From Phyllobates terribilis (Eukaryota), in assembly GCF_046119375.1 (NCBI RefSeq), contig NW_027362767.1, positions 246,884,001-246,948,000 of the forward strand: a DNA stretch of 64,000 bases, read 5' to 3'. Below, piece after piece: positions 14,401 to 47,416 of the stretch (positions within the stretch are counted from its first letter, which is position 1; every line of letters begins with the position of its first letter). The notes under the pieces are model-generated. The model was not told the DNA's origin, searched no databases, and saw only the letters and a list, made by a program, of their open reading frames with translations. The position numbers and the translations under genes were made by a program.

Positions 14401-14550
14401 TAGAGGATCCACCTCACCTGGTAAGCTTTTAAAGAAATGCTGTATTGGGTGATATCGGATAAGACATAAAGGCATTTGGCTCGCTGTTCTCATTAGATAT
14501 TGTGTGAACATTAGGTTCTTGGTTGTAGACTGTGCTCCTCAGGTCATTAC

Positions 14551-15063
14551 TATGACGCTAGTCACTACTCACGGACAGACAGTGAGGCAGAGAAGTCAGA
14601 CGTTTTCGGGGTCAGTACCAAGAGTGTACGTAGAAAACCAAAGGGAAAGACAAAGGTGTAAGTCAGATCACGGTCTGGGATCAAATACCAGGAGATTGGG
14701 GATCAAAGCAAAAGGGAAAGACAAAGGGATTGTCAGAACATGGTCCAAAGGGTCAGGAAGCAGAAGATCAGAACTCAGCACAACAGAATCAGGCAAACAC
14801 CAGGAAGCACAAACTAGGTCTGGCAGGGATCAGAGACAGACAGCTCAGCTGGGCAATCTCCACAACAGAGAACACCTGGAGGAAGCCCCGCACCTCCCAG
14901 TCACAGATTGGGCAGCTGAGTTATCAATCAAAATACCGACAGCTCAGCATGCCAATCACAAGATTGAATGGCCGAGCTGTCAATCAAAACACTGATGGCT
15001 CAGCATGACCCAGATTCCAGAGGGCAGCGAAACAGTCACTCACTGAGCGGTGGAGTCGTGACA
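14551..15063. mobile_element. Solo LTR (Ty3/gypsy type)
   Basis: Termini TATGAC...GTGACA flanked by 5-bp TSD ATTAC (14546-14550 and 15064-15068). Confidence 0.75.
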
Positions 15064-18000: not shown

Positions 18001-18513
18001 ATCAGTCCAGGCTGCACACTTTGCTCCAGTACCTGCTGCACGGTTACTGCCTGTTTCTTATAGTTACTGTGTGCACAGTCCTAATGCGTCCCCAGCCTAT
18101 TGCTGTGAGTCACTGGATACTTAAACCCCCTCCACCCAGTAGGAGGTGCCTGAGCAACACTTTCTTTCAGTGTGTTCTGTGCAACTGAGTTGCCAGGTCC
18201 TGTCCTGTATCTTGTCTGTTTCCGCCACCCTGGGGGCTGTATACCCAGGCCTGTTACCTGTATCTGTGACTTCTAGTCTGTTTCCGCCACCCTGGGGGCT
18301 GAGTTCCCAGGCTCGTTCCTGTATCTTGTTCCTGGTTCAGTTCCTGTCTGAACAGTGTCCTAGCCCATTACTTGTTTGTCTCTATGTCCGTATCTTCCCT
18401 TTTCCTGCAGTGTCTGAACCTGCACCTAACTCCAACTGGTTGTCTCTGTACTACTGTTTGTGAGTTTAGTGTCCGCTCGCTACTTCATTGTAAGTACCTT
18501 GTGTGTATTTTCT

Positions 18514-19009
18514 CTGCTCTGCTTGTCTACCGCACTTGCGGGTTTTGCTCTGCTCTACTTGTTTACCGTACCTGCTGGTTTTGCTCTGCTCTGCTTGTCT
18601 ACCGCACCTGCGGGTTTTGCTCTGCTCTGCTTGTCTACCGCACCTGCAGGTTTTGCTCTGCTTTGCTTGTCTACCGCACCTGTGGGTTTTGCTCTGCTTG
18701 TCTACCGCACCTGCGGTTCTTGCTCTGCTTGTCTACCGCACCTGCGGGTTTTGCTCTGCTCTGCTTGTCTACCGCACCTGCGGGTTTTGCTCTGCTCTGC
18801 TTCTCTACCGCACCTGCGAGTTTTGCTCTGCTCTGCTTCTCTACCGCAACTGCGGGTTTTGCTCTGCTCTGCTTGTCTACCGCACCTGCGGTTTCGCTCT
18901 GCTCTGCTTGTCTACCGCACCTGCGGGTTTTGCTCTACTCTGCTTGTCTACCGCACATGCGGGTTTTGCTCTGCTCTGCTTGTCTACCGCACCTGCGGGT
19001 TTTGCTCTG
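18514..19009 (+). repeat. 36/31-bp minisatellite inside LTR A (resumes at 23322-23388)
   Basis: Unit CTGCTTGTCTACCGCACCTGCGGGTTTTGCTCTGCT, about 15 copies. It generates the spurious 12-aa-periodic ORFs. Confidence 0.95.
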
Positions 19010-22000
19010 TGTTAAAGGGTCCGGGTGGTGGAACCTCTGTGCTGCGGTGCAAGGAGGGACCCAGAGGGGCGTAACTAAGTATCAACTCGAACCGACCCTG
19101 GTCGGACGGCGGCTAACGACTCTGTGACCAGGGAGGATCCGAGCTGAGGGACCAGGTGCTACTCTGGGGACGACCTTGTAAGAGAGCAGGTGGCTCCCAC
19201 AGGCCAGATGGCTGGGACTGACCGGTATAGCGGATGGACAACAAGCAGGCAGAAGTCTTTGGGTAGCTGATGGGTGGTCACGGCAAGTGACAGCAGAGCA
19301 GGTAGAAGTCTCTTGGCTAGCAGGCAGGTGGTCACGGCAAGTGACAGCAGAGCGGGTAGTAGTCTCTTGGCTAGCAGGCAGGTGGTCACGGCAAGTGACA
19401 GCAGAGCGGGTAGAAGTCCCTTGGCTAGCAGGCGGGTAACAGATGAGTGCTTCCAGGTGAGCGGACTAGCAGGCACGGCAGGTAGCAGACAGGTAACTGG
19501 TAGGTGCTTCCTGGTAAGCAGGCGGGCTTGCCCATAGACAGACTGGCGGGTACAACGGAAGGCAGACTGTCAGGCTGGAGAGTAGTCAGGCTGGCGGACT
19601 GGAACAGTAGTCAGGCTGGCAACTGGACCATAGGGCTGAAGCAGAGGTAAGTATACATGTGCAACAACTATTGCTCCGGCCCCTCCATTTTGGAGGAGGT
19701 GCCTTATATATGGGAGGTCCTCCGGCTATTGGCCGGAGACTCCTTAGGACGGCTCGAGCGGCCCCTTTAAGAGAAAGAGAGCGCGCGCGCGCCCTAAGCA
19801 CAGTGCCCGGGAAGCTGCGCGCGCCGGCAGCAGCAGGAAGAGGAGCGCGGAAGGACGCCGCTCGGGGAGCGGGGAGGTGAGAGGGACGGCGTCTCTGCCT
19901 GGCAGGGGGCAGAGACGCCGGTGCTACAGTACCCCCTATTTACGCCCCCTCTTTTTTAGGCCAGGCAAAAAAATTTTTAGGAGAAGCGGGGCATGGATGT
20001 TCTCCCTGGGTTCCCAAGTTCTCTCCTCTGGACCAAACCCCTTCCAATCCACCAGAAAAAAGGTTTTCCCCCTTACCCTTTTGGTGGCCAGAATATTCTC
20101 TACCTCAAAAATGTCCTCAGCGGAAACCGGAGCAGGGGAGGAACCTGGATTATTAGAAAAATAATTAAAGACAACGGGTTTGAGGAGAGATACGTGGAAG
20201 GAGTTGGGAATCCGTAAGGTGGCAGGGAGTTTTAGCTTGTAGGCCACCGGATTTATCTGGTTAAGGACTTCAAAAGGACCGATGAACCGAGGACTCAACT
20301 TGTAGGAGGGTATTTTGAGCCGCACATGTTTGGAGGAGAGCCAAACCTTGTCTCCTGGACGGAATTGAGGCAGATCCAGACGTCTCTTGTCAGCAAATCT
20401 CTTCATCCGCTCGGAGGATTGAAGAAGTGTGGACCTAGTACTCTCCCAAATGGTAGAAAATTCACTGACCAGAGACTCCGCGGCAGGGTTGTCCACAGAA
20501 GCGGAGACGGGAAACGGAATCCGGGGATGTTGGCCAAAGACTATAAAAAACGGCGACTTGGAAGTGGATTCGCTCTCATGGTTGTTATAAGAGAATTCGG
20601 CCCAGGGTAGGAGGTTCACCCAATCAGTATGGTGGGCATTTACAAAGTGCCAGAGATAGCTAGTAAGTATCTGGTTGATCCGCTCCACTTGACCATTGGA
20701 CTGTGGATGGTAAGCGGAGGAGAAATCCAGGGTGACGTCCAGCAGCTTACAGGTAGCTCTCCAGAAGCGTGAGGTGAACTGAACCCCTCGATCCGACACG
20801 ATGTGGAGGGGTAGGCCATGAAGACGAAAGATATGGAGGAAAAAGTCCTTCGCAAGCTCTGATGCAGATGGGAGACCAGACAGAGGAATGAAGTGGGCCA
20901 TTTTAGAAAAGTAGTTAGCGACCACCCAAATGACTGTACAACCGGCAGAGACAGGGAGATCTGCAATAAAGTCCATAGCAATATGTTGCCATGGGGCATC
21001 AGGTACGGGAAGAGGCAAGAGATGACCGGCAGGTAGATGTCTGGGAACTTTGTTGCGGCCACAGGACGAACAGGCTGAGATGAAGTCTATCACATCCTTG
21101 CGCAGGGTAGGCCACCAGTAATGCCAGGTGATAAGCAGGAAGGTCTTCTTTTGGCCAGCATGGCCGGCTAGTTTAGATGAATGACCCCAGCGAAGAACCT
21201 TCTCACGATCTGGTACTGCTACAAAAGTCTTACCGGGTGGAAGACGAGTTAGATCCAAGGGAGCCACCTTCATCACCTTAGAGGGGTCAATAATGTGCAT
21301 AGGCTCCTCCTCCCGATCGAAGGACAGGAAGGATCGGGACAAGGCGTCGGCTTTGACATTCTTGTCCGCCGGGCGGAAATGCAGGATGAAGTCGAAGCGG
21401 GCGAAGAACAAAGACCACCGGGCCTGACGCGGATTGAGTCTTTGGGCATTTTGGAGATATGCCAGATTTTTGTGATTCGTATAGATGATCACCGGGTATA
21501 GAACCCCTTCCAGCAGGTAGCGCCATTCCTCCAGCGCCAATTTAACGGCTAACAATTCTCGGTCTCCGATGGAGTAGTTGCGCTCAGACGAGGAGAAGAG
21601 CTTGGAGAAGAAGCCGCAGGTGACCATTCTCCCGGATGAAGACTTTTGAGTGAGCACCGCTCCGGCTCTGGAGGAGGAAGCATCAACCTCCAGGAAGAAC
21701 TGTTTGTTACAGTCCAGACGGTGCAGTACTGGGGCAGAGGAGAAGGCTTCCTTTAAGGAAAGGAAGGCCTCCTCAGCTTCGGGCGACCATACCTTGGGAT
21801 CTGCTCCCTTACGGGTGAGAGCAGATATGGGAGCAGTCCGGGAAGAGAAGTGCGGGATGAAGAGACGATAGTAGTTGGCGAAGCCCAGGAATCGCTGAAT
21901 CGCCTTCAACCCCTCCGGACGGGGCCACTTATGGACAGCAGAGAGCTTCTCAGGATCCATTCGTAAGCCTGTCTGGGAGATGACATAGCCCAGAAATGGA

Positions 22001-23321
22001 AGAGAGGTCTGCTCGAAGAGGCACTTCTCGTATTTTGCATAGGGGTGGTTCTGCCTGAGCCTAAGCAGGACCTGACGAACATCCCTCCGGTGTGTGGGAA
22101 GATCCGGAGAGAAGACCAAGATATCGTCCAGGTATACCACCACGCAGGAGTAGAGAAGATCACGGAAGATGTCATTGACCAATTCTTGGAAGACGGCGGG
22201 AGCATTGCAGAGACCGAAGGGCATCACATGGTATTCATAGTGACCGTCACTGGTATTGAATGCTGTCTTCCACTCGTCTCCTTGACGGATACGGACCAGG
22301 TTATACGCTTCACGTAGATCCAGCTTGGAAAAGATCCTGGCGCCCTTAAGGCGATCAAACAACTCGGAGATGAGCGGCAGGGGGTATTTGTTTTTTACCG
22401 TGATCTGATTGAGTCCTCTATAATCAATACAGGGGCGTAGCGAGCCATCCTTCTTCTTGACAAAGAAGAATCCGGCTCCAGCCGGGGAAGTAGACTTCCG
22501 GATGAATCCCCTAGCCAGATTCTCCTCAATGTATTCAGACATGGCCCGGGTCTCGGCCGCCGACAACGGGTAAATACGCCCACAGGGTGGAGTGGCGCCA
22601 GGTACCAGGTCGATCGGGCAATCATATGGCCTATGGGGTGGCAGTGTCTCTGCTTCCTTTTTACCGAAGACATCCGCATAGGACCAGTAAAGAGCCGGAA
22701 GACCGGGTAAATTAGCTGGGGTAGGTGGTGGACGAGCCGGGCGAACCGGAACCAGGCAGGTCCTATGGCAGTCCTGCCCCCACCGGAGTACTTCACCGGA
22801 TTGCCAGTTCAGCACGGGTTCATGTATCTGGAGCCAGGGAAGACCTAGCAATAGGGAGTGAGAGAGTCCGGACAGCACATGGAAGGAGATCTTCTCAGAG
22901 TGCAGCATTCCCACCTGCAGGGTTATAGGTTCAGTGACGAGCAGGATGGTCACCGGAAGGAGTCTTCCATCCACGGAGGCGACTGACAATGGTTCAGCCA
23001 AAGGTTTGGTGGGAATTCGGTATCTCTCTACTACCAAGGACTGGGAAATGAGGTTTCCAGTAGCTCCAGAATCCAGATGAGTGATTTCAAAATGACGGTT
23101 CTCTCCCCAGGAGATAGAGACAGACAAAGTCAGGGATGGAGAGGGCTTACTTTTGCCTAGGACGACCTCTCCGAGCGGTCCTAGACACTGGCATTTCCCG
23201 GCTTCTCTGGGCAGGAACGGATGGAGTGCTCCTTACTGCCACAATAGAAACAGCTCCCCTCGGCTCGGCGTGAGAGGGACGGCGTCTCTGCCTGGCAGGG
23301 GGCAGAGACGCCGATGCTACA
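19010..23321 (-). mobile_element. Ty3/gypsy chromovirus element 'B', internally deleted (most of the 5' LTR and gag missing)
   Basis: TG...CA ends with TSD CTCTG (19005-19009 and 23322-23326). Full 3' LTR at 19928-19010, preceded by a polypurine tract. Only about 55 bp of the 5' LTR remain (23321 to about 23268). Confidence 0.9.
19936..23127 (-). CDS. Gypsy pol polyprotein (PR-RT-RNase H-integrase-chromodomain), open for 1063 codons
   Basis: LDSGA (protease), YLDD (RT), EVDAS and DALSR (RNase H), H..GH...C..C plus IAMDF/VSDRG/GQVER (integrase), and FLVDWKGFGPEERTWEP (chromodomain). Confidence 0.95.
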   Translation of the reverse strand: MSVSISWGENRHFEITHLDSGATGNLISQSLVVERYRIPTKPLAEPLSVASVDGRLLPVTILLVTEPITLQVGMLHSEKISFHVLSGLSHSLLLGLPWLQIHEPVLNWQSGEVLRWGQDCHRTCLVPVRPARPPPTPANLPGLPALYWSYADVFGKKEAETLPPHRPYDCPIDLVPGATPPCGRIYPLSAAETRAMSEYIEENLARGFIRKSTSPAGAGFFFVKKKDGSLRPCIDYRGLNQITVKNKYPLPLISELFDRLKGARIFSKLDLREAYNLVRIRQGDEWKTAFNTSDGHYEYHVMPFGLCNAPAVFQELVNDIFRDLLYSCVVVYLDDILVFSPDLPTHRRDVRQVLLRLRQNHPYAKYEKCLFEQTSLPFLGYVISQTGLRMDPEKLSAVHKWPRPEGLKAIQRFLGFANYYRLFIPHFSSRTAPISALTRKGADPKVWSPEAEEAFLSLKEAFSSAPVLHRLDCNKQFFLEVDASSSRAGAVLTQKSSSGRMVTCGFFSKLFSSSERNYSIGDRELLAVKLALEEWRYLLEGVLYPVIIYTNHKNLAYLQNAQRLNPRQARWSLFFARFDFILHFRPADKNVKADALSRSFLSFDREEEPMHIIDPSKVMKVAPLDLTRLPPGKTFVAVPDREKVLRWGHSSKLAGHAGQKKTFLLITWHYWWPTLRKDVIDFISACSSCGRNKVPRHLPAGHLLPLPVPDAPWQHIAMDFIADLPVSAGCTVIWVVANYFSKMAHFIPLSGLPSASELAKDFFLHIFRLHGLPLHIVSDRGVQFTSRFWRATCKLLDVTLDFSSAYHPQSNGQVERINQILTSYLWHFVNAHHTDWVNLLPWAEFSYNNHESESTSKSPFFIVFGQHPRIPFPVSASVDNPAAESLVSEFSTIWESTRSTLLQSSERMKRFADKRRLDLPQFRPGDKVWLSSKHVRLKIPSYKLSPRFIGPFEVLNQINPVAYKLKLPATLRIPNSFHVSLLKPVVFNYFSNNPGSSPAPVSAEDIFEVENILATKRVRGKTFFLVDWKGFGPEERTWEPRENIHAPLLLKIFLPGLKKRGRK

Positions 23322-26300
23322 CTCTGCTCTGCTTGTCTACCGCACCTGCGGGTTTTGCTCTGCTCTGCTTGTCTACCGCACCTGCGGCTCTGTTCCTGTA
23401 TCCCAGTCTGTACTGGTCCCTATCCTGCCTGCGTTCCTACCTGCCAGTACCCACCTGTCTGCACACCAGCCGTGCCTGCCAGTACCCACCTGTCTGCATA
23501 CCAGCCGTGCCTGCCAGTACCCACCTGTCTGTATGCCAGCCTAACCTGCCTGTTTCTGCATTCCCCGGTGTGGGTCAACAGCTGTGACCGGGGTCTCACC
23601 TGGAGTAGCACCTGGTCCCTCTGCTCGGTTCCTCCCTAGTGCACAGAGTTGACTGAGCCGCCGTGCGACCCTTCGTCGGACCGAGTTGATACTTAGTCAC
23701 GCCCCTTCAGGCACTCCTCGGTTCATGGTCCAGTGGGATCACTAACCACGCTCACGCCAGTCAGTCCGGGCGTGTGCGTGACAACTGTTAAATCAGAAAT
23801 ACTTCATTCGGTTCATTCTGACCATTCAGTAGTCTCAGTTTGCTTCTCGCTCTCTAAATCCCACTCTATCCACCACACATTGAGACTGAATGAATCAATT
23901 TTACTGTCTGACATCAATAAAAAGCGCATCCAAACCACCCTAACCAATTTCTTCGAAATCAATGCAACACCAGAAATCAAATTCTCAACCCTATGGGAAG
24001 CTCATAAATCAGTGATCAGAGGAGAACTGATTTCCATGGCGTCCTACATAAACAAACAACGCAAAAAACATACACAAACCCTTTACAAGGAAATAGCAGA
24101 TCTAGAAACACAACACAAAAGAACTCTGCTACATCAAACTTTGGAAGCCCTCACAGACAACAACTAAAGGACTTATTAAATAAGCAATCTGCTAAACAAT
24201 ACCTTAATTGGAAAAATCGCATGTTTGTGCATGGTGATAAGGCTTCCAAATTGATGATGTCCTAAATTAAAATAAGGCAAGTCCGAACCAGCATACATAC
24301 CCTGAAAACCTTCAGCGGCCACCGTACAACAGATCACAACATTATTACATCAGAATTCTTAAAATACTATTCAAATCTATATAACCTTTTTCCTGACTAA
24401 TCTGTTCAAGAAAAAACTAGAAAACGTACATACATACAATCATTCTTAACAAAACTCAATTTACTAAGGACCAACAAGTAGCATTTTCTAGGCCATTTGA
24501 TATAAAGGAGGTTAGGTCTATCCTGTCAAATAGCCCCAAAGGGAAGGCACCGGGCCGTGATGGTCTCCCTATTACATATTATAAGACCTTCTCCTCGATT
24601 CTTGAACCCCACCTTCTCAATATGTGCAATGGAGTACTCCAAGGTGAATCCTTCCCTCCCCAAACGCTTGAAGCCCACATCTCTCTCATACATAAAGAAG
24701 GTAAAGATCCGGAATGTTGCAGTAACTGCAGACCGATTTCTTTACTAAACGTGGATCTCAAAACGTATGCTAGCATGCTGGCAAAACATATAGCAGATGT
24801 TTTGCCAAAATTGATATCACCAGGTCAAACTGGCTTCATTAAGGGAAGGGAGGGTAAGGACAACGCCTGGCGAGTTCTCCACCTGCTACAGTACTCTATC
24901 CACCATAAGCTTCCATTGGTGCTCTTAGGCACCGACACGGAGAAAGCCTTTGACAGGGTAGACTGGACCTTCTTACAAGAGATACTTAATGGCTTTAATT
25001 TTCCCCCTGTTGTGACATCGGCAATACGCCAAATGTACTCTCATCCCTCAGCTAAAATTAAAATGAACAATTCCCTCTCTAATCCTTTCACTATTCATAA
25101 CGGAACAAGGCAAGGCTGCCCCCTTTCACCACTTTTATTTATTATGGTGATGGAACCTTTGATTAAATCCATTAATCAATGTGAGGACATAGTGGGGGTC
25201 AATATCCATGGTATCCACCATAAAACCATGGCCTTCGCTGATGACCTTCTCATCTCAATGACACAAACCTCACAAAGGGATTCCGGCCCTTATGCAGATT
25301 TTAGACAAATATGGTTCCTTGTCCAACTTCAAAATAAATCTTTCCAAATGTAAAGCACTGGGAAAAAAACATACCAATACACACCATAAACTGCTTTAAA
25401 ACCGAATTCCCATTCAGATGGCCAGAAAGTCACATCACTTATTTGGGCATCAAGATAAGTACATCCTATAAAGACTTATTTAAACTTAACTATAAACCTC
25501 TTCTTGTTACAGTCACAGACCACATCAAGCAATGGAGGGGTCCCTATCTCTCTTAGTTTGGCAGAAAAAAACTAATTAAAAGCGTTATTTTATCCAAATT
25601 CATTTACCTATTTCAAATGCTTCCCATTTCTCTGTCCAAAACATACTTATCCAAAATTAACTCACTCTTTTTTAAATTACATTTGGAACAAGCACCTACC
25701 AAGATTGAACTCCCTAACTTTATCGCTCCCTAAGAGATCGGGCAGTATGGGAGTACCCAATATCCATAAATACTACCAAGCCGCCATACTATCCAGAACT
25801 ACTGATTGGATCAGAAAAACGAGGGAGAAGCTATGGCTCTCCATAGAAGAACATATGTCACCTATACCACTGCGCTCAATAATTCTATCTAACCTCATTT
25901 TAACAAATAAAACTACATTTCACAACCAACTAACACGCACAACGGTCAAACGTTGGTTAACAGTCGCAGATTCTTTAGCTCCCCTCCTATCTCCATTATC
26001 TCGAGCATCGGACTTACTAACCCCAAGCTTAGGATAACCCAAATCACATAATACAGGAAGACATGTAGAAACCTCCCCCTTAATAGACCAACTACTGAAG
26101 GATGGCTCCTTCATCACCTTCCAAGAAATGAACGCCTTGCCTACAATGTCCAACTTTAATTTTCTCCATTATGAATCTTTAAAAAAGGCAGTACATCAAG
26201 ACTTGATAAAGGGAGATCCCTCTAGACCACTCACTGCTTATGAATCTCTTTGCGCACAGACAAGTCCGCCAAAGAAAATCCTCTCTTCTCTCTACAACAT

Positions 26301-28939
26301 CCTACTCTTGAAGGATATATCTCAGAAGAGAGCATTCTTGTTAAAATGGGAAAAAGAGTTGGGTACCTCTTTTACTGAATCCCAAAGCAAACAAATATAT
26401 AATTTCTCACATGGTCCTTCACAATGTGTCAGGGTTCAAGAGAACTCCTATAAAATAACCTCTCAATGGTACACAACACCCATCCAGACTCATAAATGAT
26501 TTTCTACTACCCCAGAGCTTTGTTGGAGGTGTGAAAGGGATAAAGGATCTTAATTACACAAATGGTGGAATTGCCCAGTTATTCAAAGATTCTGGAAAAT
26601 GGTATCCCAAACCCTATTTGAACTGCTACATATACACTTGACCTTAACCCCAGAACACATATTCTTAAACCTCCCCATTAAATCGGACAAAAAATTCCTA
26701 TCTTAATTAGTTTATTTTGTTCTATCGGCGGGTAAGCTTCTCATACCACCACTTTGGAGCACACCTGATTTACCAAGCAAGAAGCAATTGCTTCTCAAAA
26801 TTGACTAATTATTCCAAACTGAACAACTGGCAGACTTGTCAATGCAAAATCTCGCCTCCTTTTATCAGGTTTGGACTCCATGGCAGAAATTCAGAAACTC
26901 AGCTTCCTTCCTATCCTCTATCACATAAACTGTCTCAACATTTTAAAGTACGCTATTTTTACTTTTAACCTCTTCATACAGTGATTGGACCACCCCCCCC
27001 CCCTGCTCACTTTCCCATCCCCTTCTCTTCCTCCCCTTTTTATCCAAGTTTCCTTTTCCTCATACCCCAGTTGATTATTTGAACCTTTCATTTTTTTTAT
27101 GCATTCTTGTTTCTCGTTTTCTTACATTGTCATTACTTATATATGGAGACAAAACGGTCTCTCTTTTATGTTATACACTGTCTATATGTTCAAACTGAGT
27201 CATCTCTATTATTGTGTATTGCTGCAATCTACATGACAATACCTTGTACCTCAAATTCAAGTCTTTAAAAAATTTGCTGTACCTTTTTTCTACATGATTT
27301 GATTCAGCTTGAAAAATTGAATATGTTATCTGTTATATCTAATTCTTTAATAAATAAAACATTGAAAACAAAACAAAATAAGTGTATCTGGAGGACTGTT
27401 CCAGATTCAAAAGATTTCATCAATGTATCTATGCCAGCAAATTGAATGTTGCATAAATAAATCATTTCTATAGATGTATTTGTTTTCTAGATGCTAATAT
27501 GGCAGTTGGCATAGGCAGGTACCACATTGGACCCCATGGCTGTGCCTCAAATTTGGAAATAGAATTTGTCTCTAAAAAGAAAAAATGTTTCATGTAAGAC
27601 AACAGTGAGAAGATCAATACATAGTTGAATAGAATCATGGGACAGGTGAGAATTATTGAGCGTATCAATTACATTACAGCCTGTAAGCCCTTGTCATGTT
27701 TAAAAGAGGTGTATAAGCTGTTAACATTGAGAGTGACCATTTTGCTGTCTGGGGCAACCGTTGATAAATTTCTAATGGTCTAAAGAAAGTGGCCTGTATC
27801 TAGTGTGAAGGATGCCGCTTTCTTGAGCAAAGGAGTAACAATTTCCTTCAAATAGGTGGATAATGATGAAAGAATAGAGTCAGTGGAGATGACTATGGGG
27901 CATGCCTGTGAATTCTATAGGGATTTATATATTTTTGAAAAAAAGTAAAACATCACGGTCACTGGGTGTGGATTGGTGAGGAAAGTGACGGTCTTTTGAT
28001 TAATGGTGTTATTGTTTTGATGTATGGTGATCTTCTGATGGAGCTTGTGATGGTAGAAGTGGGATCATAAGGAATTTTCTTGTATGTGGTTTCTGTCTGT
28101 AGGTGAATTTTACAACTGCGGCCTGATAAAGAACAGCGTTATTGACGTCTTTGTACCGTTTCTGCCTTTGGAATCAGAGTATGTGAAGATGTTCATTAGA
28201 GCAGAGCTTGAGCGGCCGGGAAGAAAAGTAGATAAGAAGTTTGTCTGCAGGATTGCCAAAGGCGTAGATTATTTTTTTCAATCAGATCATTTTTTATTGT
28301 GAAAGATATTAAGATACATTCACATTTTAATTAGTTTTTAGAAGAGACAATCAAAACTAAATAAAAGAAAGGAAACACAAATAAAAAAAACATAAGTCAA
28401 CCAAATACAAACCGGTTCCTATTAATGGTCATCGTAGGTATTATCATTCGTTTACTACAAATTACATATATGGATACAAATATAAATGAATACCATCTGA
28501 CTGCTGGTGTATTGCATTAAAATACAGAGAACCAGAGCATTTACATGTAATTATTTTTGACACTTTTGTTTTCCAAGATCTAACACTTTGGGTGTGAAAG
28601 GCATGGATTATTACCGCAAGGAGGAACAATTTTTTTAAAAAATGGCTGCAAAAATGTGCACATACGGGTGCACAATCATTCCACAAGCTATAGAAATTTC
28701 TACCATACAGCAGATTGAAGACATAAAATCGAAAATAAAAAATACCTTCCAAACTGGTGTGTCTTCATTATTGCTGTCACGAGCATTGCCTGCCTCAAGC
28801 CCTGTTTCACAAAAGTGATGTGCGACATTAGTTTTCCCATGCGCTGTTATGAAACATGGCTATAAGTAATTAAGCAGGCATGTATCACATGTGAATCGTA
28901 CAGCACAAGAAAGAGAACTGATGGAGTCACGTGGCCTAA

Positions 28940-36605: not shown

Positions 36606-39600
36606 ATGAAGTTGCTGAGAGCGGCGCTGTGGTTTTTACTCCCGGTGGTCACCCGGGGGGAGCCCATCTCCATCACGGTCGGTACTGTGTCATTGATCAC
36701 CGGGGTCATCTCTTACTATGGCCTACACAGCTACCTCTGGGGCAGCAGCCGGATGGAGGGAACTGTCAATGTCACAGGTAATGGAGAATAAGGCAACAAC
36801 ATGCCCTATAAGCTATGCTGGGAGTTGTAGTCCTACAGCAGCTGCATGCCCACAGGTGGCAGATCCTTGTGATTGGTGTGCTGGGAGCTGTAGTCCTGCA
36901 GCAGCTGCATGCCCACAGGTGGCAGATCCTTGTGATTGGTGTGCTGGGAGCTGTAGTCCTGCAGCAGCTGCATGCCCACAGGTGGCAGATCCTCGTGAGT
37001 GACAATACTGGAAGCTGTAATGCTAAAACTATTTAGTTTTTGTGCTTTTTTTGTCTTTTTTTTTTGCATATCAGAAAAAAATGATAATTTTTAATCCACG
37101 TTTGCTCTTATATACAGAAAAAAAAAGTCTCCCAAGTTTGTCGTCCTCATCAAACAATAAAAAAAAAAAAAAACAGACTACACTTGGATGAGATTTTTTG
37201 GGGGGTGGCAGGGAGCAATCAGACTGCAAAAAAAACCACAAAAAAATTATTTTAGCTTCCCCATAGCTTCTAATGGGTATGTGAACTCATGTATGAAGAG
37301 GGGTGTCCTGCTTGTTACCCCAGTCTATAAGGCCTCATCCAGACATCTGTGTGTCACGGACGTGTTCTTTATATGTTTTTGATACAGGAAAAAATGTCTC
37401 ATTGTACCCTGTTAGTCCGTAAATAGAAAAATATATGGAGCGTCCTCAGTGGCTGATACCATCTTTTCAGTCAGCCATTAAAAAGTAACAGGTAATTGAG
37501 GTTTTAAGACTCCTCAGGTCTCTTCATCAGGTTCAGAATAACACAAATCTGAAGAGTCACATATTTCTACACAACGGGACACAGGAATAATGCAATAATA
37601 ATACAAGTGACGGAAAGCAGAACTATCACTATGGGAGAGGGAGAATCACTTATGGCTGTAAATATTGGAGCAGTTCATAGATAAGGAGTGTGGAAGTTTT
37701 ATTGTCTTGTGACTGAGGTCTGGTCCAGGGTTGTGATGACCCCCACAGGTCTGAGAGGCACATTCCTTATTTGATGTAGCAAGATATAAATCCATGCGGC
37801 ACATTCATTCCTGCTCTGAGTGTTCCACGTTGTCATTAGTTTGTTCTCCCAGACTCTTCGGTCTCTCTGGGATGTGACGTTCCCTTTCAGTACCAGCAGT
37901 TTCAAGTCCATGATGCTGTGATCAGGGCTAGCGAATACTTGGCCACAGGTAGATCTATTATTTTTTAACTTTTATATTGTGGTGATGAAAATTCATCCTC
38001 ATTCAAAGTTTTTGTCCTGTCTCCCGTAACATACAGACCCCCAGCTGAACATTTGGTACATATATTTAAGTACACCCCATCAGATGTGCAGCTATAAAAC
38101 TACTTGGGATCTTGTAGTCTCTTTATCTTCTTCCTCGGTCATTATTCCTGTTGTTGGAGAGGACAATGAGGCTTCTCAGTGGCGTCAGAAAAATCCTTTG
38201 TGAATCAGGGCTAAAATCCAAGATCAATTGAAAACCAGATTGCAAGAGCCACCGGAATATCAAGGAATCATCTCCTACATTACAAAACCAATGCAGAAAG
38301 CAACCGGGTCCCTTTAGTAGTCACCTACAATCCAAACCTGGAGGAGCTGCACGGAGACTACAACCATTTTATTACAAAAAGATGCCCTATTAAAGTCTAT
38401 ATTTCTGGACCCCCCCCCTGTGTTATAGGCAGCCCCCAAATCTAAGAAGCATCATTGTCAGAAGCTCCCTGTCCCTCCACCAACAGGAACCTCCCCCTGC
38501 AACCAGAAAAAATGGAAAACCTGTTCATTTATAATGGCCACGGACAAGATCCCCAACTCACATCAGGACTACAAGATCCCAGGTTCTTTCAGCTCCATCA
38601 AATCTTATTTATATGTACCAAATGTCCAGCTGGGGGTCTGTATGTTGGGGAGACAGGGCAAAAACTTAGAACAAGGATGAATTCTCATCGCCACACAATA
38701 GAAAAAAAAAGATATATCTGTGGCGGAACATTTTTGTATCCCTGATCACAGCATCATGGACATGAAACTGCCAGTATTGAAAGGTAACGTCACATCCCAG
38801 AGAGACAGAAGAGTCTGGGAGCACAAACTTATCCCAACCGGAACACGCGTCTTATTTGTGGATCAACCATTCAAGTGAATAATCTGTGAAAACAACCACA
38901 GACAGCTCTCGGTTGCCAGATGTGTCCAGTAGGAGGAGCTCGGAATAAGTTTCTTGTTTGCATACAAGAAGAATGGCTGCCGTTGGTAGAAAAGAGAAAA
39001 TTTTGGATAAAATGCACTCATGAAAAAAAGGTCCAACACAACTGATGTCTGAATGAGACCTAAGACTGATAAAAGCAGCGGGCAGAGTCGCCCTCCAGGC
39101 TGTCCTCCTGCAGGGGATTGTCCAGATACCAATACCAGCTCCTGGCAATATCAGCTGGAGATGAAGCTACTTAAAGGGATTGTCCATTTGAAAAAAACAA
39201 AACAAAACATGTAGCTGTGTTCCTCATCTACTGTAAACACTTTACAACCTTTTAATTCCAAAGATTTTTCCAATCTTAAGATTTCCAAAAATTGTCAGAT
39301 TTCTTATTTTAATTAGTTAAAAAAAAAATCCAATTAAATAAAATCTTTAACATACTTAATATTCTGATCTTCCAGCTCTGCAGTTGGACTTTGACAGTCA
39401 TATATTCGGACAGCATCTGGCCAAGCAGGTGATACTAAAGGCTGTTCCTCGGTTCCTGAGCAATGAAAATCCTAAGAAACCCCTGGCGCTCTCCTTACAC
39501 GGCTGGACCGGGACGGGCAAGAACTATGTCAGCCAGATCCTGGTCAACCACATCTACTCGGAGCCCATGAGGAAGAAGTGCGTGCGTACGATTGTGGCCA

Positions 39601-42600
39601 CGTTTCACTTTCCACATGCCAATAAAATCCAGACATACAAGGTAATGAGCTGCATGGCATGCAGCATAGATCTACCGTTCTGTGTATACAGCTCCTATGC
39701 AGACTTATTTGTATCCTTGACTACAATCCTTTAGTAGTCTGATCCTGCTGGCATGCACTCTCCCATCTGCGATTACACAGGATCTGTTTGTAACGCTGGG
39801 GAAACAAAACGGTAAGAGATTTCTAATCCTGTTTTTATATTTTAGGTGCACAACACAAAGAGGTTGTAAATTGGACTTGCCCTATAAGAACCTCATTTCA
39901 CAGTGGCCTGGTTGTATTAGGGGATTGCTATTTATGCAGTTCTCTCATTTGTAACCCCTTAAGTACTAGGCTCAGGAGCTAAGCCCTCTCCATACATGAC
40001 TGACGCCAGCTGTGCTATACAGCTGCACCTGACTCTAGTCACTGCCATTTTACCCTTTAGATGACGCTTTCATTTTCAGACAGTCTAATTTAAATGGTTT
40101 AAAATGATGTTGCCAGCTAAAGCATTATATTAGTACAAACTAGCCAGAATCTTTGAAAATTCCTGGAGAACAAAAGAAGTCCCAGAAGATTGGAGAAGGG
40201 CAAATGTTGTCTCTATCTTCAAAGAAATGAAAGAAGCTGGAGCCAGGAAATTACAGGCCAGTGAGCCTTACTTCTATACCAGGAAAGATCTTTGAACACA
40301 TTATTAAACAGCATGTATGTAAGTACTTGGACAAGAATATAGTAATTAACCAGAACCAGCATTGGTTTGTAGCAAGCAAATCATCCCCTTTTTAGCTGTT
40401 TTTTTTTTCTTGAATCTTAGGGGAATTTTAATTCCTCTTATTGTGGCTTTGCTTTTAGTTTAGTGTTAGGACTCGTAAGTATGAGGACCCTTGACGTGGG
40501 TTGCGAGATTGTGTATTGCGGTCAAAATATAGACCAATACCTCATATATTATATGTATGTATTTTTTGCACTTTTTTTAATTCCAGGGTGTAGCCAGGCC
40601 CATCAGTGCTGGTATTATAAACTAGGGTGTTTGTCCTCATGGGGTGCACTCAGATAGTACCGGGCAGCCCGCCTAGTCTAATAGTATGGGCATCACTAAT
40701 GGGCTGTAAGCTGGATACTGTGCACTACCCAAGTGTGACCAGCGCCCTATACAAGCCTTTTTTTGTGTGCAATTTTAATACTAAACAATCACCCCCTCCA
40801 TGAACTAGTAGGTTGTGAGTGGTTGACTCATCAGTATTTTGCACCTGTGTTGCCGCCATCTTTATTATATGGGTTTATGGGTTTGCTGCATCCTGTTAGT
40901 GCATTAGTTCTGAGGTCTGGGCAGGTAAATACTGCTGCCCTTTTTGCTGTTTTTTTTTTTTTTTCTTGAATCTTGGGGGAATTTTGTGTTAGGAGAAGCA
41001 TAGAGTCTAGATCACATGAAGTAATTATCCCCCTCTACTCCTCCTTGGTCAGACCTCATCTGGAATAATGTGTCCAGTTCTGGGCGCCACATCTTAAAAA
41101 AGACATGAAGAAACTGGAGCAAGTTCAGAGAAGAGCTACCAGCATAGTGAGCGGACAGCAAACTATGTCCTACGAGGAACGGTTAAAGGATCTGGGAATG
41201 TTTAGCTTGCAAAAAAAAAAAAAAGACTGAGGGGCGACTTAATAGCTGTCTACAAATTGTCACTATTAAAAGTCATGTTTTAATACTTTCCTTCATTGCT
41301 GCTGATGCTGGATTTCTTTCGCTTAGCTGTCTACAAATATCTGAAGGGCTGTCACAGTGTAGAGGGATCATCCTTATTCTCATTTGCACATGGAAACACG
41401 AGAAGCAATGGGATGAAACTGGGAGAAGATACAGATTAGATGTTAGAAGACACTTTTTGACAGTGAGGGTGATCAATGAGTGGAACAGGCGGCCACGAGA
41501 GGTGGTGAGTTCTCCTTCAATAGAAGTCTTCAGAGGCTGGACAGACATCTGTCTGAGATGGTTTAGTGACTCCTGTATTGAGCAAGGGGTTGGACACGAT
41601 GACCCGGGAGGTCCCCTCCAACTCTAACATTCTAGGATTCAAGCAATCACCGGTTTATGTCCCCTAAGGGGACTAAAAATATATGTATAAAGTAGGTTAA
41701 AAAAATGTTTGTCACCTCCTTTGCCCAATCCAACAATTAAAAAAAAAAAAAAAGCATATTCTTTATCGCCGTGTCTATAAAATTATGATCTATACATATA
41801 GCAGCATGGTGGCTCAGTGGTTAGCACTGCGGCCTTGCAGCACTGGGCTCCTGGGTTCAAATCCCACCAAAAACAACAACAAGGAGTTTGTATGTTCTCC
41901 CAGTGTTTGCGTGGGTTTCCTCCCACACTCCAAAGACATACTGATGGGGCTCACAATCTAGATTCCCTAATAAGGACAACGATGATAATGTCTGTAAAGC
42001 ACTGGGGAATTAATGGCGCTATAGAAGTGAGTAAAAAAAAAAAGTACTAACCCCTAGAGGGTAAACACTGCTAAAGGGGAAAGAAGCAAAATGTCACTCG
42101 CCATTCTATTGTCCCTGCACTTTCCCGAAAAAATGCAATGCATTAAAATGTTCCCTAAAATGTTATCAGTGAAAACTGCAGCTCATCATGCAAAAGACAA
42201 GCAGGTTTTTCATTTACTTTTGCCGGAGCCCGTGCGCTGATAGTCTCATCTCTTCCCCCATACAGGACCAGTTACAGACTTTGGTGAAAGACTCTGTGAA
42301 GGGCTGCGAGCGCTCCATCTTCATATTCGATGAGATTGATAAAATGCACCCCGGCCTCATCGACGCCATCAAGCCTTTCCTGGATTACTATGAGCACGTC
42401 GATGGAGTATCGTACAGGAAGGCCATGTTCATTTTCCTCAGGTGAGCGTCTATATCTCTCCATTGCTCCTAAGGAAAACCCCTTTAAGTCCCAAACAGGC
42501 CTAACTCTTAAAGGGGTTATCTGTCGCTGTCCACATCAGAGGCTCTGAGAGGCCACCCCACACGTCTCCCACGATTTCTGCACAGGTCTTATTCATTAGT

Positions 42601-43755
42601 ATGTGACACGTGCACCATACCTGCCGCTTCTGCACACTCCCTGACAGGTGTGTGGGGCCATAACGTCATCGGCACTGCTCGCCTCTGATGCGGAAGTGAT
42701 CAGCACCAGGAATCCCTTTAAGGAGAGACTATACTTTATCAACCAGGGCAGCAATCATTGAAATCGCACTTAAAGGGAGTCTGTCAGTACAAAATGACTG
42801 TTCAAACCAAGCACCGGCATCAGTGCTCCTTTTTGCTTACTTGTTTTCCATCTACCTCCACCCTTCCCTGGCTAAAGTAAAGCCACAGCTGTCAATCAAG
42901 GAAGAAGGGGGTGGAGGTAGATGGAAAATAAGTAGTTGGGAAAGTGTAATGAACTTTTCGACCACACTAAAATTGCACCAAGTACGTGTGCTTGATTTGA
43001 ACAGTCATTTTGGGCTGACAGAGTCCTATGATTTTTATGGGTGTTACATATATATATTTTTTCCCCTGTATATTTTATATACCAGTAATGCTGGAGGAGA
43101 GAAGATCACAGAATTATCTCTAAAGTTCTGGAGAGCTGGAAGAAATAGAGAGGAAATCAAATTATCTGATGTAGAAAGGGATGTATATTTGTCTGCCTTC
43201 AACAAGAAAGACAGTGAGTATGATGTGTGGTCCAGAAACGGACTTCACCCCTTAATCTATGGCTCCAGGAGGAGAGATAAGTGGATATTCTTCCATATCT
43301 GGCATCCAGCTGGAAAGGATATGTGGGAGGAGTTTGGTGACCTGCTGTCTGTCAGTTACCTGATCTCAGCCAATCATGAAGAGGGGGAGTGTTTTCTGAA
43401 ATATTGGAGGAGAGCAGCTGACTGTCCTTTTCAGCTGATTGCCAAAAAACTTTATTTTTTTGTAATTGTATTTTTTTACTAATTCTCCCACCCGTCTCTG
43501 CTCATTTTAGGTGGTTACTGGCACAGCAGCCTGATAGATAAAAACCTGATTGACATCTTTGTGCCGTTCTTCCCCATGGAGTTCCAGCACGTGAAGATGT
43601 GTGTGAAGGCGGAGCTGGAACATCGCGGCTTTGTGCCGGATGAAGAGACCATGGTCGCCATCGCCAAAGACATGACTTATTACCCCTCTGGGGAAAAAGT
43701 TTACTCTGTAAAGGGCTGTAAAACTGTGTCCACAAAGCTGGATCTTTTCCTATGA
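36606..43755 (+). CDS. Torsin-1 family AAA+ ATPase (divergent torsin-1A/1B-like paralog), complete, 328 aa
   Basis: Five GT-AG exons join in frame: 36606-36777, 39376-39641, 42266-42441, 43086-43213, 43511-43755 (987 nt). Signal peptide plus hydrophobic segment, FGQHLAK, Walker A GWTGTGKN, Walker [10 protein letters not shown], sensor-1 SNAG, sensor-2 KGCK. Confidence 0.95.
36816..36992. repeat. 63-bp tandem repeat, 3 copies, in torsin intron 1
   Basis: Unit GCTGGGAG(T/C)TGTAGTCCT(A/G)CAGCAGCTGCATGCCCACAGGTGGCAGATCCTTGTGATTGGTGT. Confidence 0.9.
37500..38830. mobile_element. Penelope-like fragments: plus-strand GIY-YIG piece with an inverted copy of its 3' end upstream
   Basis: [22 protein letters not shown] at about 38635-38700 (+). 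The segment at about 37830-37925 is the reverse complement of 38742-38830. Minus-strand CTGATGA hammerhead-like remnant at about 37505-37532. Confidence 0.75.
40140..41640 (+). mobile_element. CR1 LINE (RT fragment 40140-40390; 3' part about 40990-41640) with an intervening unrelated insert
   Basis: [14 protein letters not shown]...[20 protein letters not shown], and a 3' terminus GGTCCCCTCCAACTCTAACATTCTAGGATTC. Confidence 0.85.
41801..42030 (+). mobile_element. tRNA-derived V-SINE (HE1/DANA-like)
   Basis: Box A TGGCTCAGTGG and box B GGTTCAAATCC, followed by the V-domain GGAGTTTGTATGTTCTCCC..GTGGGTTTCCTCCCACACTCCAAAGACATA. Confidence 0.8.
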
Positions 43756-46700
43756 CGTATACATTGCACGGACTGGCGGCCTCCACTTCTTGCCCTACGA
43801 GTTGGTCAGTTTTTCCCGCTTTTCGAATGAACTCCTGTGGCCTTCGGCGTCCTGGATTGGACGTAAATTTTGGGAGCAGACCCCCAGGCAATGGTCTGCC
43901 ACTTTTTACGGAATGATGATCACTTTGATGAAGACTATGTATATATTATGTCATGATGGATCTGATTTCTACTTGAAGAATTAATAATTATCTACATGAA
44001 TTAGTGTTTTTATCCACGTCTGCTACGTCTAAGTCATCTGTCGCCAACCTATCGCTTTCCAGCTGTTGCAAAACTACCAGTCCCAACATTACCTGACTGC
44101 CTCCAGCCCAGCTATATAGCGCCATGCCACAGCTGGGGTTAGGATCGGCAGAGTCCAGTTTGTGAATGAAGAGGTACTGAGCATGTGCGACCCTCTGTCT
44201 ACAAGGCTGGTGGTCGCAGGTGCCCAATGTCGCTCATCAAGAGAAGCAGGAGGAGAGGTTAATCGGCTCGTGAGCGGTGACATGACGGACCTGCCAGCAG
44301 AGCGCTGTGCATAACAAGTAATAGAGCATCCGACATCATACCGGGGCCTTTCGAAATATAGTCCTGGTGATTTTGCAGACTTTTTCTGTGCCCCCTGATT
44401 GGGTTTTCATGACCGTTTAGTGACTTCCCTTGCACCCACTAGCTCAGATGTATTATTTAAATAGGTATCTGAAAGCAAACCTAATGGCGCCGGTTAACTT
44501 AAAGGGCTTGTCCAGTTTTAGCAAATTAAAGGTAATGTATCATCAGAAAATGAAATACTGTTTAAAAAAAAAAAATTGCCACTAGGCCTAGAATTAGACT
44601 CCTACTTTCTGTTCTTCACATGGACGATATCAAAAATAGACAGACTTGGACCCTATTAGTTTGTATAGAGGAGTTATCTAGGCGTGCTCTAATCTGAGCA
44701 AAGATCATTGTACAGGAGGATGAGGAGGTGAGCTGTGGTAGCACAGGAACCACCATTCACAATGGGCAGTCACAGCTCTCCTCCTCCTCCTCCTGTACAA
44801 TGGCTGATAACACCTCCTATATACAGTAGATAACACAGGATCCACCATTCACAATAGGTGATAACACAGCTCACCCCCCCCCCCCCTCAGTATATAGTAG
44901 ATAACGGAAGATCCACCATTCACAATGGTTTGTCTATATACATTGTACACAGAAAGAAGCCAATCAGAGGTGTGGGCTTAGTTATACACGGCTCAGTATT
45001 CTGAGCTCTGCTAGATCTGAGAAGACTGCGATTCTATCACAACTGCTTCACCGAGTAACCTAAGGGACACAGCTGGAATCAGAGTCTCTGCCCCTACATT
45101 GTGCTGTTAGATTATATAACAAAAACCTGATGACAGATTCCCTTTAAATAAGTAAGTCTGGCTTCTATTAAAGCTGATGCAGAGATTTGAAGGTGGCTAG
45201 TTTAGTTATTAAAATGAGCTGTCAGCCAGCCCCCTTCTCACACAGCTCTGATGATTCTCTGACACAGGAAACGAATTGCCAAAAGCCTTTAAGCCCCCGT
45301 CTCGCATAGCGAGATCGCTAGCGAGATCGCTGCTGTGTCACGGTTTTGGTGACGCAACAGCGACCTCACCAGCGATGTCGCTATGTGTGACAATTTGCAA
45401 CGATCAGGCCCCTGCTGTGAGGTCGCTGATCGCTGCAAAGTGTCCTGGACCATTTTTTGGTCGTTGCCCTCCCGCTGGTCAGCACACATCGCTGTGTGTG
45501 ACCAGCGGGAGCAGCGATCAGGCTGGTGACCATGATAAACATCGGGTTACTAGGTGCGCATGTGCCCCTAGTAACCCGATGTTTATCATGGTTACCAGCC
45601 TGCGTCTGCTTCAGCAGGCTCGTAACCAGGAGCAGGACATCGTAGAAAGATTCTTTCCACGATGTCGCTGCTCCCCTGATCGTTGGTGAGCCTGCCTGTT
45701 TGACAGCTCACCAGCGATCACATAGCGACGCAGCAACGATCCCTGACAGGTCGTATCGTTGTCGGGATCGTTGCAGCGTCGCTAAGTGTGACGGGGCCTT
45801 TAGCCTGCTTGCTGATTGTTTCCAGGAAGCAGAAATATCTGGTTTTATAAACCGCAAAGAGTAAAAGAAAAGCTAATATTTTAACATTCACTTTGTATCT
45901 GGTGTTTATTAAAGGTTAGGCACCGTTACTCTCTGGCCTTACATACGTCCTTCCCTCCTGGCGTTCGTGTTATTTTAATTTTATTTTTTTTATTATTCCA
46001 CTAGACATTTCCAGATTTTTGTTCTGTATGTTTATAAAATAAAAAAAACATTAAAAAAAAGGAAGCTGTGAATGTAACAGTGTAATAAATTATTTCTTGT
46101 CAATTGGAAATCTTATGACAGCCGATCTCCGGTTACTCGACCATTAGGTAACAGTCAGAGATACCACGTGCTGCCGGCGGCAGGATCACAAGCTGGAGAG
46201 AGTATTGCTCTGGGTTAATGTATACTCTGACTATAAGAGCATTCATACATGGGCTTAGCTATAGGGTCTAGCCCATCTGCCCCATGAGAAGAGACCGTTG
46301 TTGTATACGGTACATGGGGCCCATGAGACAGATTTATTTATTTTATTGGTGCCCAGTTATGGAGCAATCATGTGACACTTGGCCGCGTTAAGTCCGCCAG
46401 TCCTTTGTAGCAGATCCATTGGTGGATCCCCGCTTTATGGAAAATTGAGGGAACTTGAAGGTTTCCATAAGTCCCATTCATCCCCCTGGTGTGTAACATC
46501 CAGCCCTTCGCCCCCAGTGTAGAACATTCGGCCCCCCGCCATGCCGCCTGTCTTTACTAACACGTGACATATCGGTGGTGCAGAGCTCCCTGATACCAGC
46601 GCGGTCCTGTAATAGGAGCCTCCGGGGTAACAAGTCCGTCCATGACATTTCTTCCTCCTAAATCTTCCCCCATCACCTGTGAGTGATATTATTGAGAAGT

Positions 46701-47205: not shown

Positions 47206-47416
47206 ATGGCTGCTGTCAGGGGGTCCCGTCCCACGACTTGGCTCCTCTTCTTGCTGGTGGCGCCTCCGCTCCTCCATGTCGTTGTGTCCCTGGAGCCTAT
47301 CACCACAGGCCTCGCTATAGCAGCCGCCTCGGCCATTACAGCCTACCTGTCCTCTGAGATCTACTGCGGGTTGCTGTCGGAGTGCTGCCAGGTGGACAAG
47401 CCCTTCAATAGTACAG
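47206..47416 (+). CDS. TOR1B: Torsin-1B-like protein, exon 1 (remaining exons beyond the window; intron over 16.5 kb)
   Basis: Signal peptide, then LEPITTGLAIAAASAITAYLSSEIYCGLLSECC...FNST, versus recalled TorsinB FEPITVGLAIGAASAITGYLSYNDIYCRFAECC...LNAS. Phase-1 GT donor at 47417, the same phase as the neighbouring paralog. The 1B versus 1A assignment rests on this one exon. Confidence 0.75.

Follow-up and report, generated by a model that had tools for sequence, protein, structure and literature searches.

The 64,000-nucleotide stretch of Phyllobates terribilis DNA analyzed here (contig NW_027362767.1, positions 246,884,001 to 246,948,000; hereafter the window) carries a torsin-1 gene on its + strand, at 36606-43755. 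We assign a probability of about 0.8 to this gene being the positional ortholog of tor1a in frogs, intact and functional, with a modest twist that is common to the hyloid clade as a whole. The differences between its product and human TorsinA, whose residue numbering is used below unless stated otherwise, would then fall into two layers. The first consists of plainly non-mammalian states, namely the absence of the N143 sequon (N-X-S/T), Lys at position 302 followed by Asp or Glu at 303, Gln113, and Val316. The second would be a burst of change on the hyloid stem, in which the N158 sequon and the last cysteine of the N-terminal linker were lost, a cysteine was gained at position 128, and about 15 near-invariant positions were altered.

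Gene structure, fold, and constraint

The gene comprises five exons, whose 987 nt encode 328 residues and a TGA stop in a clean frame, separated by introns that are all GT-AG, with phases 1, 0, 2, and 1. Its product was read and aligned exon by exon, as single exons, and the HMMER alignments to human TorsinA (chains 5J1S and 6OIF) are gap-free in exons 2-5. Exon 1 (36606-36777), which has 57 whole codons and ends in phase 1, shares 93% identity with residues 1-58 of the Dendrobates tinctorius protein P0152. Downstream of the ATG, it shows two hydropathy peaks (residues 1-16 and ~19-38) flanking an EPIS motif, which correspond to a predicted signal peptide and a predicted hydrophobic membrane-association domain, an arrangement that is a feature of the torsin-1 subfamily (PMC5425593). 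At the place of TorsinA LYCLFAECC, which holds C44, C49, and C50, both the reading of the exon and the site tables reveal a linker without cysteine (36714-36752). The exon closes with an NVT sequon (36768-36776), an ancestral site that mammalian TOR1A does not have and, according to an N-X-S/T scan of all five exons, the only sequon in the gene.

The remaining exons encode the catalytic core. Exon 2 (39376-39641) contains the Walker A GKN (39516-39524), the Cys at position 128 (TGC, 39579-39581), and, in place of TorsinA HFPHASNITLYK, a stretch in which ASNIT has become ANKIQ (39618-39632). Within exon 3 (42266-42441), the RGNVSA of TorsinA IRGNVSACARS reads KDSVKG (42287-42304), with loss of the N158 sequon, and is followed by C162 (42305-42307) and the Walker B DE (42329-42334). 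The first whole codon of exon 4 (43086-43213) is the sensor-1 Asn. Exon 5 (43511-43755) encodes the small domain, with C280 in KMC (43600-43602), a K-D pair (AAAGAC, 43666-43671) opposite E302-E303 where TorsinA VAEEMTFFP has become IAKDMTYYP, and the KGCK sensor 2 (43711-43722) shortly before the stop (TGA, 43753-43755). Pfam matches are well above the cut-off of 27 bits for both Torsin in exon 2 (PF06309; E 3e-35, 121 bits) and TOR1A_C in exon 5 (PF21376; E 2e-25, 89 bits). The sequence motifs of the torsin family are all present. The non-canonical Walker A GxxGxGKN occurs as GWTGTGKN and the Walker B as FIFDEID, both aligning to TorsinA, together with the sensor-1 Asn, while KGCK and KMC align to C319/K320 and to the redox partner C280. 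What the initial annotation had read from the letters is thus confirmed by exon reading and alignment, namely an intact frame with Walker A, Walker B, sensor-1, KGCK, and its partner Cys, a Cys-free exon 1, the N143 and N158 positions without sequon and NVT alone left, and K-D opposite E302/E303.

The AlphaFold model of P0152, used as a proxy since it is an ortholog, has a predicted local distance difference test score of ~90 over residues 51-328 and superposes on human TorsinA (5J1S_A) with a template modeling score of 0.92 (normalized by target length) at 58% identity. It displays an AAA+ fold with a C-terminal small domain. The product would therefore be, as expected for a torsin, a lumenal AAA+ ATPase of the endoplasmic reticulum and nuclear envelope, with a signal peptide and a monotopic hydrophobic anchor. 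The active site of torsins is completed by LAP1 or LULL1 (PMC4999309; PMC5425593), and by homology the P. terribilis protein would hydrolyze ATP only when one of these cofactors supplies the arginine finger.

Purifying selection acts on the gene and has been strong since the hyloid radiation. This is evidenced by two hyloid pairwise comparisons, in which the ratio of nonsynonymous to synonymous substitution rates (dN/dS, Nei-Gojobori) is about 0.10, not near 1. The value is 0.098 against Engystomops genomic DNA (calculated per exon and summed; 325 codons, dS 0.71) and 0.12 against a spliced 1.7-kb Logan transcript contig, another hyloid-type sequence. The gene also appears to be expressed. We aligned contigs from four sequencing runs, which belong to two studies of the source organism, to 37800-43799, a segment that covers exons 2-5. 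The three predicted GT..AG joints (39641|42266, 42441|43086, and 43213|43511) are present in contigs of all four runs, a single 2,054-nt contig spans exons 2-5, and the piece covering exon 2 begins at 39373. Contig depth is 50-180 in exons versus 3-9 in unique intron sequence. The spliced forms and the thin intron coverage fit mRNA.

The same contigs provide several side observations. A minor alternative GT..AG joint links 39810 to 42265, its donor lying 169 nt past the end of exon 2, at a depth of 4 in one contig of one run. Two exon-5 variants, 43636 C>G (Pro to Ala in GFVPDEE; three of the four runs) and 43622 A>G (His to Arg in LEHRG; one run), are probably polymorphisms, and both alternative residues occur in other hyloid orthologs. 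Within introns, the stretches 38600-38800, 40200-40400, and 41000-42000 reach summed depths in the thousands in all four runs, and many of the contigs there are partial. The most likely source of this signal is transposable-element families that are transcribed or multi-copy, not the gene itself. Intron 1 begins, right after exon 1, with a 63-bp tandem repeat (36816-36998; 2.9 copies, 97% matches).

Genomic position and relatives

The duplication that gave rise to TOR1A and TOR1B has been placed at the root of tetrapods, with flanking genes conserved from mammals to amphibians (Sager et al. 2012, PMC3460957). The order printed in that study has TOR1B adjoining C9orf78, unlike the gene tables of otter and Spea bombifrons, where the gene adjoining C9orf78 is TOR1A. 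C9orf78 and TOR1A share a strand in otter, and TOR1B is convergent. In Spea, USP20 is on the opposite strand, whereas C9orf78, a 329-aa torsin, a 189-aa Lectin_C gene, and a 339-aa torsin-1B share one strand; the C-type lectin gene (16144-17401 of that locus) thus separates the tor1a-type gene from tor1b. In Dendrobates and Engystomops, a 328-aa torsin is followed by a 341/342-aa torsin on the same strand. The window displays a matching arrangement. An exon of Hep_59, the C9orf78 homologue (5991-6191, + strand; PF07052, E 8e-16), provides the upstream synteny anchor, and it is followed by a degenerate torsin copy, the gene under study, and tor1b, all on the + strand. The P. terribilis gene therefore fills the TOR1A slot, and the orientation of tor1b alone differs from mammals, tandem here instead of convergent. 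A tblastn search of the exons of the gene against the 64-kb window found no convergent torsin copy downstream of it and did find the degenerate copy upstream.

The neighboring tor1b, a paralog from the tetrapod duplication (PMC3460957), is represented by its exon 1 (47206-47416, + strand), which has 78% identity with the Anomaloglossus torsin-1B-like protein P0245. This exon ends in phase 1, as does exon 1 of the tor1a-type gene, but retains the IYCGLLSECC cluster, along with an NST sequon. Intron 1 of tor1b is longer than 16 kb and extends past the end of the window. More generally, torsin-1B differs from the tor1a-type product in keeping C44/C49/C50, and the frog 1B proteins, of ~340 aa, keep the N158 sequon.

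The closest database protein is P0152, a 'torsin-1A-like' protein of D. tinctorius (93-99% identity per exon). Proteins of 328 aa with ~80-90% identity are found in Eleutherodactylus, Rhinoderma, two Bufo species, Dendropsophus, and Engystomops, which brings the 328-aa orthologs to seven hyloid species. Torsin-1A proteins of non-hyloid frogs have 325-330 aa and roughly 60-70% identity. A torsin-1B-type protein (339-364 aa) was recovered separately in nine frog species, two of them hyloids with a sampled 328-aa protein. When exon 5 was compared with a library of 50% identity, the matches were mostly fragments and the one close match was P0001 (E. coqui GDO78_015990, 244 aa). This truncated protein combines an exon 2 of the type of P0182, another E. 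coqui protein, with exons 3-5 of the 328-aa type, and thus represents a chimeric gene model or else a copy that arose by recombination.

We analyzed 66 vertebrate torsin-1 proteins in a careful IQ-TREE phylogeny with fish tor1 as outgroup, in which P0152 stands in for P. terribilis and from which P0001 (chimeric), P0012 (unnamed), and the long branches P0020, P0032, and P0182 were omitted. The anuran 1A-type proteins form a clade (100/99) whose inner order is largely that of the frog species tree, and the hyloids form a subclade within it (100/100). The 1B proteins of frogs, newt, and caecilian fall within a 1B clade (100/99), and amniote 1A forms a clade of its own. A first quick tree in which the frog genes fell outside all torsin-1 was an artifact of a midpoint root placed in the fast frog clade, and this placement disappeared after fish rooting with the five rows dropped. 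Together, tree, synteny, and copy number make TOR1A orthology with rate acceleration the economical reading. The gene had first been described as a lineage-specific paralog. The term paralog does not hold, the gene being in the TOR1A slot between C9orf78 and tor1b with relatives that track the frog species tree. Lineage-specific survives in part, since the losses of the Cys cluster and of the N158 sequon are derived in one lineage; that lineage, however, is the hyloids (seven of seven sampled) and not this genome alone.

The degenerate third torsin copy (11667-28673, + strand), interrupted by stops, a frameshift, and an insertion, ends 8 kb upstream of the intact gene. It is found in pieces at 11667-11840, 13496-13641 (a frameshift and a stop), 15124-15258 (two stops), and 28102-28338 with 28605-28673 (a stop and ~270 bp inserted). 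Its best match and relative is the E. coqui 'torsin-1A-like' protein P0182 (320 aa), a type of copy with a canonical GSGKT Walker A, not the torsin GKN, in which ECC and GNVS are kept. P0182 falls inside the anuran 1A-type clade, with an end branch of 1.97, and is otherwise not resolved. Upstream of the 328-aa gene, Engystomops also has more torsin models (241 aa and 206 aa, or one fused model of 613 aa). Tandem torsin expansion thus looks like a hyloid trait.

Non-mammalian states and hyloid changes

Human TorsinA has six conserved cysteines (44, 49, 50, 162, 280, and 319) and two occupied sequons, N143 and N158 (PMC8889903). The P. terribilis protein departs from this set, keeping C162, C280, and C319 and neither sequon. 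It shares with human TorsinA (5J1S, 5J1T, and 6OIF) the Torsin and TOR1A_C domains, GKN, DE, the sensor-1 Asn, GCK, C280, the residues R288, M304, T305, K317, and D327, the signal peptide, EPIS motif, and anchor, and the position downstream of C9orf78 on the same strand. It differs by the absence of C44/C49/C50 and of both sequons, the NVT at the end of exon 1, K302, D303, Q113, V316, Cys128, and the ~15 hyloid-specific substitutions. Other frog torsin-1A proteins (Xenopus tropicalis P0168, Spea P0166, and Dendrobates P0152) are alike in length (325-330 aa), synteny, clade, K302, Q113, and V316, but only hyloids, P. terribilis included, combine loss of N158, a linker with zero Cys, and Cys128.

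The two sequons have different histories. Across the 66 proteins, the N143 sequon is found in mammalian and squamate 1A and in Alligator 1B only, in no frog and no fish. It is thus a late amniote gain that frogs and fish never had, and the claim that it had been replaced in P. terribilis falls away. Being missing from all frogs and fish sampled, it cannot define the TOR1A orthogroup. The ancestral pair of glycan sites is the exon-1-end site (here NVT) plus N158. The N-glycan sites predicted at residues 63 and 164 of zebrafish Torsin1, a single pre-duplication gene, agree with this pair (PMC3460957). The exon-1-end sequon is kept in most frog torsin-1A proteins. The N158 sequon is kept in 57 of 59 non-hyloid vertebrate torsin-1 proteins, including those of all 16 frogs outside Hyloidea and Myobatrachoidea and the fish tor1 proteins; the exceptions are two myobatrachoids, both of which are also without W154. 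It is lost in all seven hyloids and in the P. terribilis gene. Its replacement therefore stands as a derived loss, in hyloids and also in both myobatrachoids, and hyloid torsin-1A would carry one N-glycan, not two.

A similar picture emerges for the cysteines. The C44/C49/C50 trio of the linker is present in every tor1b, in nearly all amniote 1A, and in most fish, where the CC pair is found in most species (two of nine have one Cys). Linker cysteines are down to one in ranoids, myobatrachoids, Bombina, Discoglossus, Hymenochirus, and Leptobrachium, and are wholly lost in hyloids only (seven of seven plus P. terribilis), all 18 non-hyloid frogs holding at least one. Loss of the exon-1 Cys cluster is thus upheld as derived, and it is clade-wide in hyloids. 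The same seven hyloids and P. terribilis have a new Cys at position 128, which no other sampled frog has. Every sampled frog 1A-type protein has Cys 162, 280, and 319 plus at least one of Cys 44, 49, 50, and 128, with one or two extra cysteines in a few. A C44-C162 disulfide has been proposed for human TorsinA, although not demonstrated (PMC8889903). In the AlphaFold model of P0152, Cys126 (position 128) lies just before strand β2 (127-131), and Cys160 (position 162) lies between the long helix 139-159 and strand β3 (164-168). Strands β2 and β3 are neighbors in the AAA+ fold. Cys128 may have taken over from the lost N-terminal Cys as the partner of C162, a possibility suggested by the constant presence, in all sampled frog 1A-type proteins, of at least one lumenal Cys besides 162, 280, and 319.

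Cys49 and Cys50 have been implicated in the proteolytic release of TorsinA from the membrane (Zhao et al. 2016, as cited in PMC8889903 and PMC5425593). Judging from its linker, hyloid torsin-1A would be unable to undergo release that depends on these residues. Since the site is missing, release, if it occurs, would use another site; tor1b keeps the ancestral linker.

Position 303 is Asp or Glu in 66 of 66 proteins. Position 302 is Lys in most frog 1A-type proteins (Arg or Asn in three species) and in most frog 1B, and Lys or Arg with D/E303 occurs in several fish tor1. The exact K-D pair is also found in Pseudophryne, five of the seven hyloids, Bufo 1B, Rhinophrynus 1B, and Scleropages. The K-D pair is therefore not atypical, as had been supposed, K302 with D/E303 being common in ordinary non-mammalian torsin-1. 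E302 is not a conserved residue, Lys being usual in frogs and frequent among fish; conservation applies to the acidic character of position 303 and to the α7 helix, which, with the loop that follows, is indel-free in the alignment to TorsinA. This pattern agrees with the view, derived from structures, that the dystonia allele exerts its effect by making α7 shorter. Binding of LULL1 survives removal of the E303-Arg276 salt bridge but not deletion of E303, M304, or T305 (Demircioglu et al. 2016, PMC4999309). Given these deletion results and the fact that nothing is deleted here, K-D is no reason to expect a cofactor defect. At the interface, R288, M304, T305, K317, and D327 are kept, while K113, E302, and D316 are replaced, which holds for every frog 1A-type protein; Q113 and V316, found in all of these, also occur in fish tor1. 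Altered activator specificity, which had been proposed, is not indicated by these comparisons.

To delimit the hyloid changes, we looked for sites whose residue is invariant to 88% or more among the 59 non-hyloid proteins but differs in six or all seven hyloids. There are 15 such sites (C50, G85, G123, S126, H130, F132, W154, I155, G157, N158, S241, L270, L272, V300, and K309), and the P. terribilis gene has the hyloid state at all 15. Several cluster in the stretches 123-132 and 154-158, which suggests coordinated remodeling of one region.

Alternative readings and significance

Three points weigh against our reading of the gene as a functional tor1a ortholog. First, the run type was guessed as RNA, and the contig evidence is limited to exons 2-5. 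Second, the α7-α8 loop is crucial for LULL1 binding (PMC4999309), and K309 and the next residue, both in this loop, are changed in all hyloids, which leaves a small opening for altered activator specificity. Third, the free tree sets the anuran clade plus Pleurodeles outside a group made of 1B and of amniote 1A with Rhinatrema, with weak support (85/60 and 88/73). As a result, sequence alone is no proof of 1A orthology.

It is unlikely that the gene is instead a neofunctionalized, lineage-specific torsin-1 paralog that has changed in its release from the membrane, its folding, and its LAP1/LULL1 specificity alike, as the initial annotation had it. The hyloid stem is indeed long (0.38 versus 0.11 for the ranoid stem), ~15 near-invariant positions are changed, K309 among them, the Cys cluster and the N158 sequon are lost, and hyloids have extra tandem torsin copies. 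However, the TOR1A slot is occupied by this gene, and no other 1A-type gene was recovered from these frogs save decaying or divergent tandem copies. Moreover, all other frog 1A-type proteins and many fish likewise have K302 with D/E303, Q113, and V316. There is no indel in α7 or its loop, and the purifying selection described above has been strong.

A shade less probable still is that frogs, and perhaps salamanders, have kept an old third torsin-1 lineage that was lost elsewhere, the true frog tor1a having been lost, so that the gene is neither 1A nor 1B. In favor of such a history, the best fish-rooted tree has the anuran 1A-type proteins and Pleurodeles as sister to 1A plus 1B, and V316 and Q113 are common to frogs and fish tor1. 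Yet that topology is weakly supported, and a single clade of anuran 1A-type and amniote 1A is not rejected by an approximately unbiased (AU) test (p 0.39, log-likelihood difference 2.3). In addition, the slot beside C9orf78, on the same strand, is identical to that of mammalian TOR1A, there are two genes per frog wherever both types were recovered, and more losses are needed than under rate acceleration. Finally, that the gene is a decaying or unexpressed copy is very improbable: a degenerate torsin copy does exist 8 kb upstream, but the frame of this one is open over five exons with consensus splice sites and all catalytic motifs kept, and we rejected the pseudogene reading on the frame, the dN/dS of ~0.1, and the spliced contigs of four runs.

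With the gene taken as the frog tor1a ortholog, one may tentatively, and at rather low odds, go further and see a single event in the hyloid changes. In one burst on the hyloid stem, N158 and the linker cysteines, including the release site, would have been lost, the partner of C162 would have become Cys128, and the α7-α8 loop would have changed; the extra tandem copies, observed in hyloids alone, may be of the same age. If true, hyloid tor1a would be permanently membrane-anchored and singly glycosylated, with regulated release left to tor1b, and would represent a natural separation-of-function allele set for TorsinA biology.

The gene is already annotated as torsin-1A-like in related species, and the hyloid-specific changes are without a published account that we found, our literature search having returned no description of hyloid-specific torsin variation. 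The result mainly corrects a mammal-centered view of torsin-1 and reveals no new kind of system. Nevertheless, hyloid tor1a is a natural mutant, without N158 and C44/C49/C50 and with Cys128, that is under strong constraint, and it could be used to probe the N158 glycan, the proposed C44-C162 bond, and cleavage at Cys49/Cys50.

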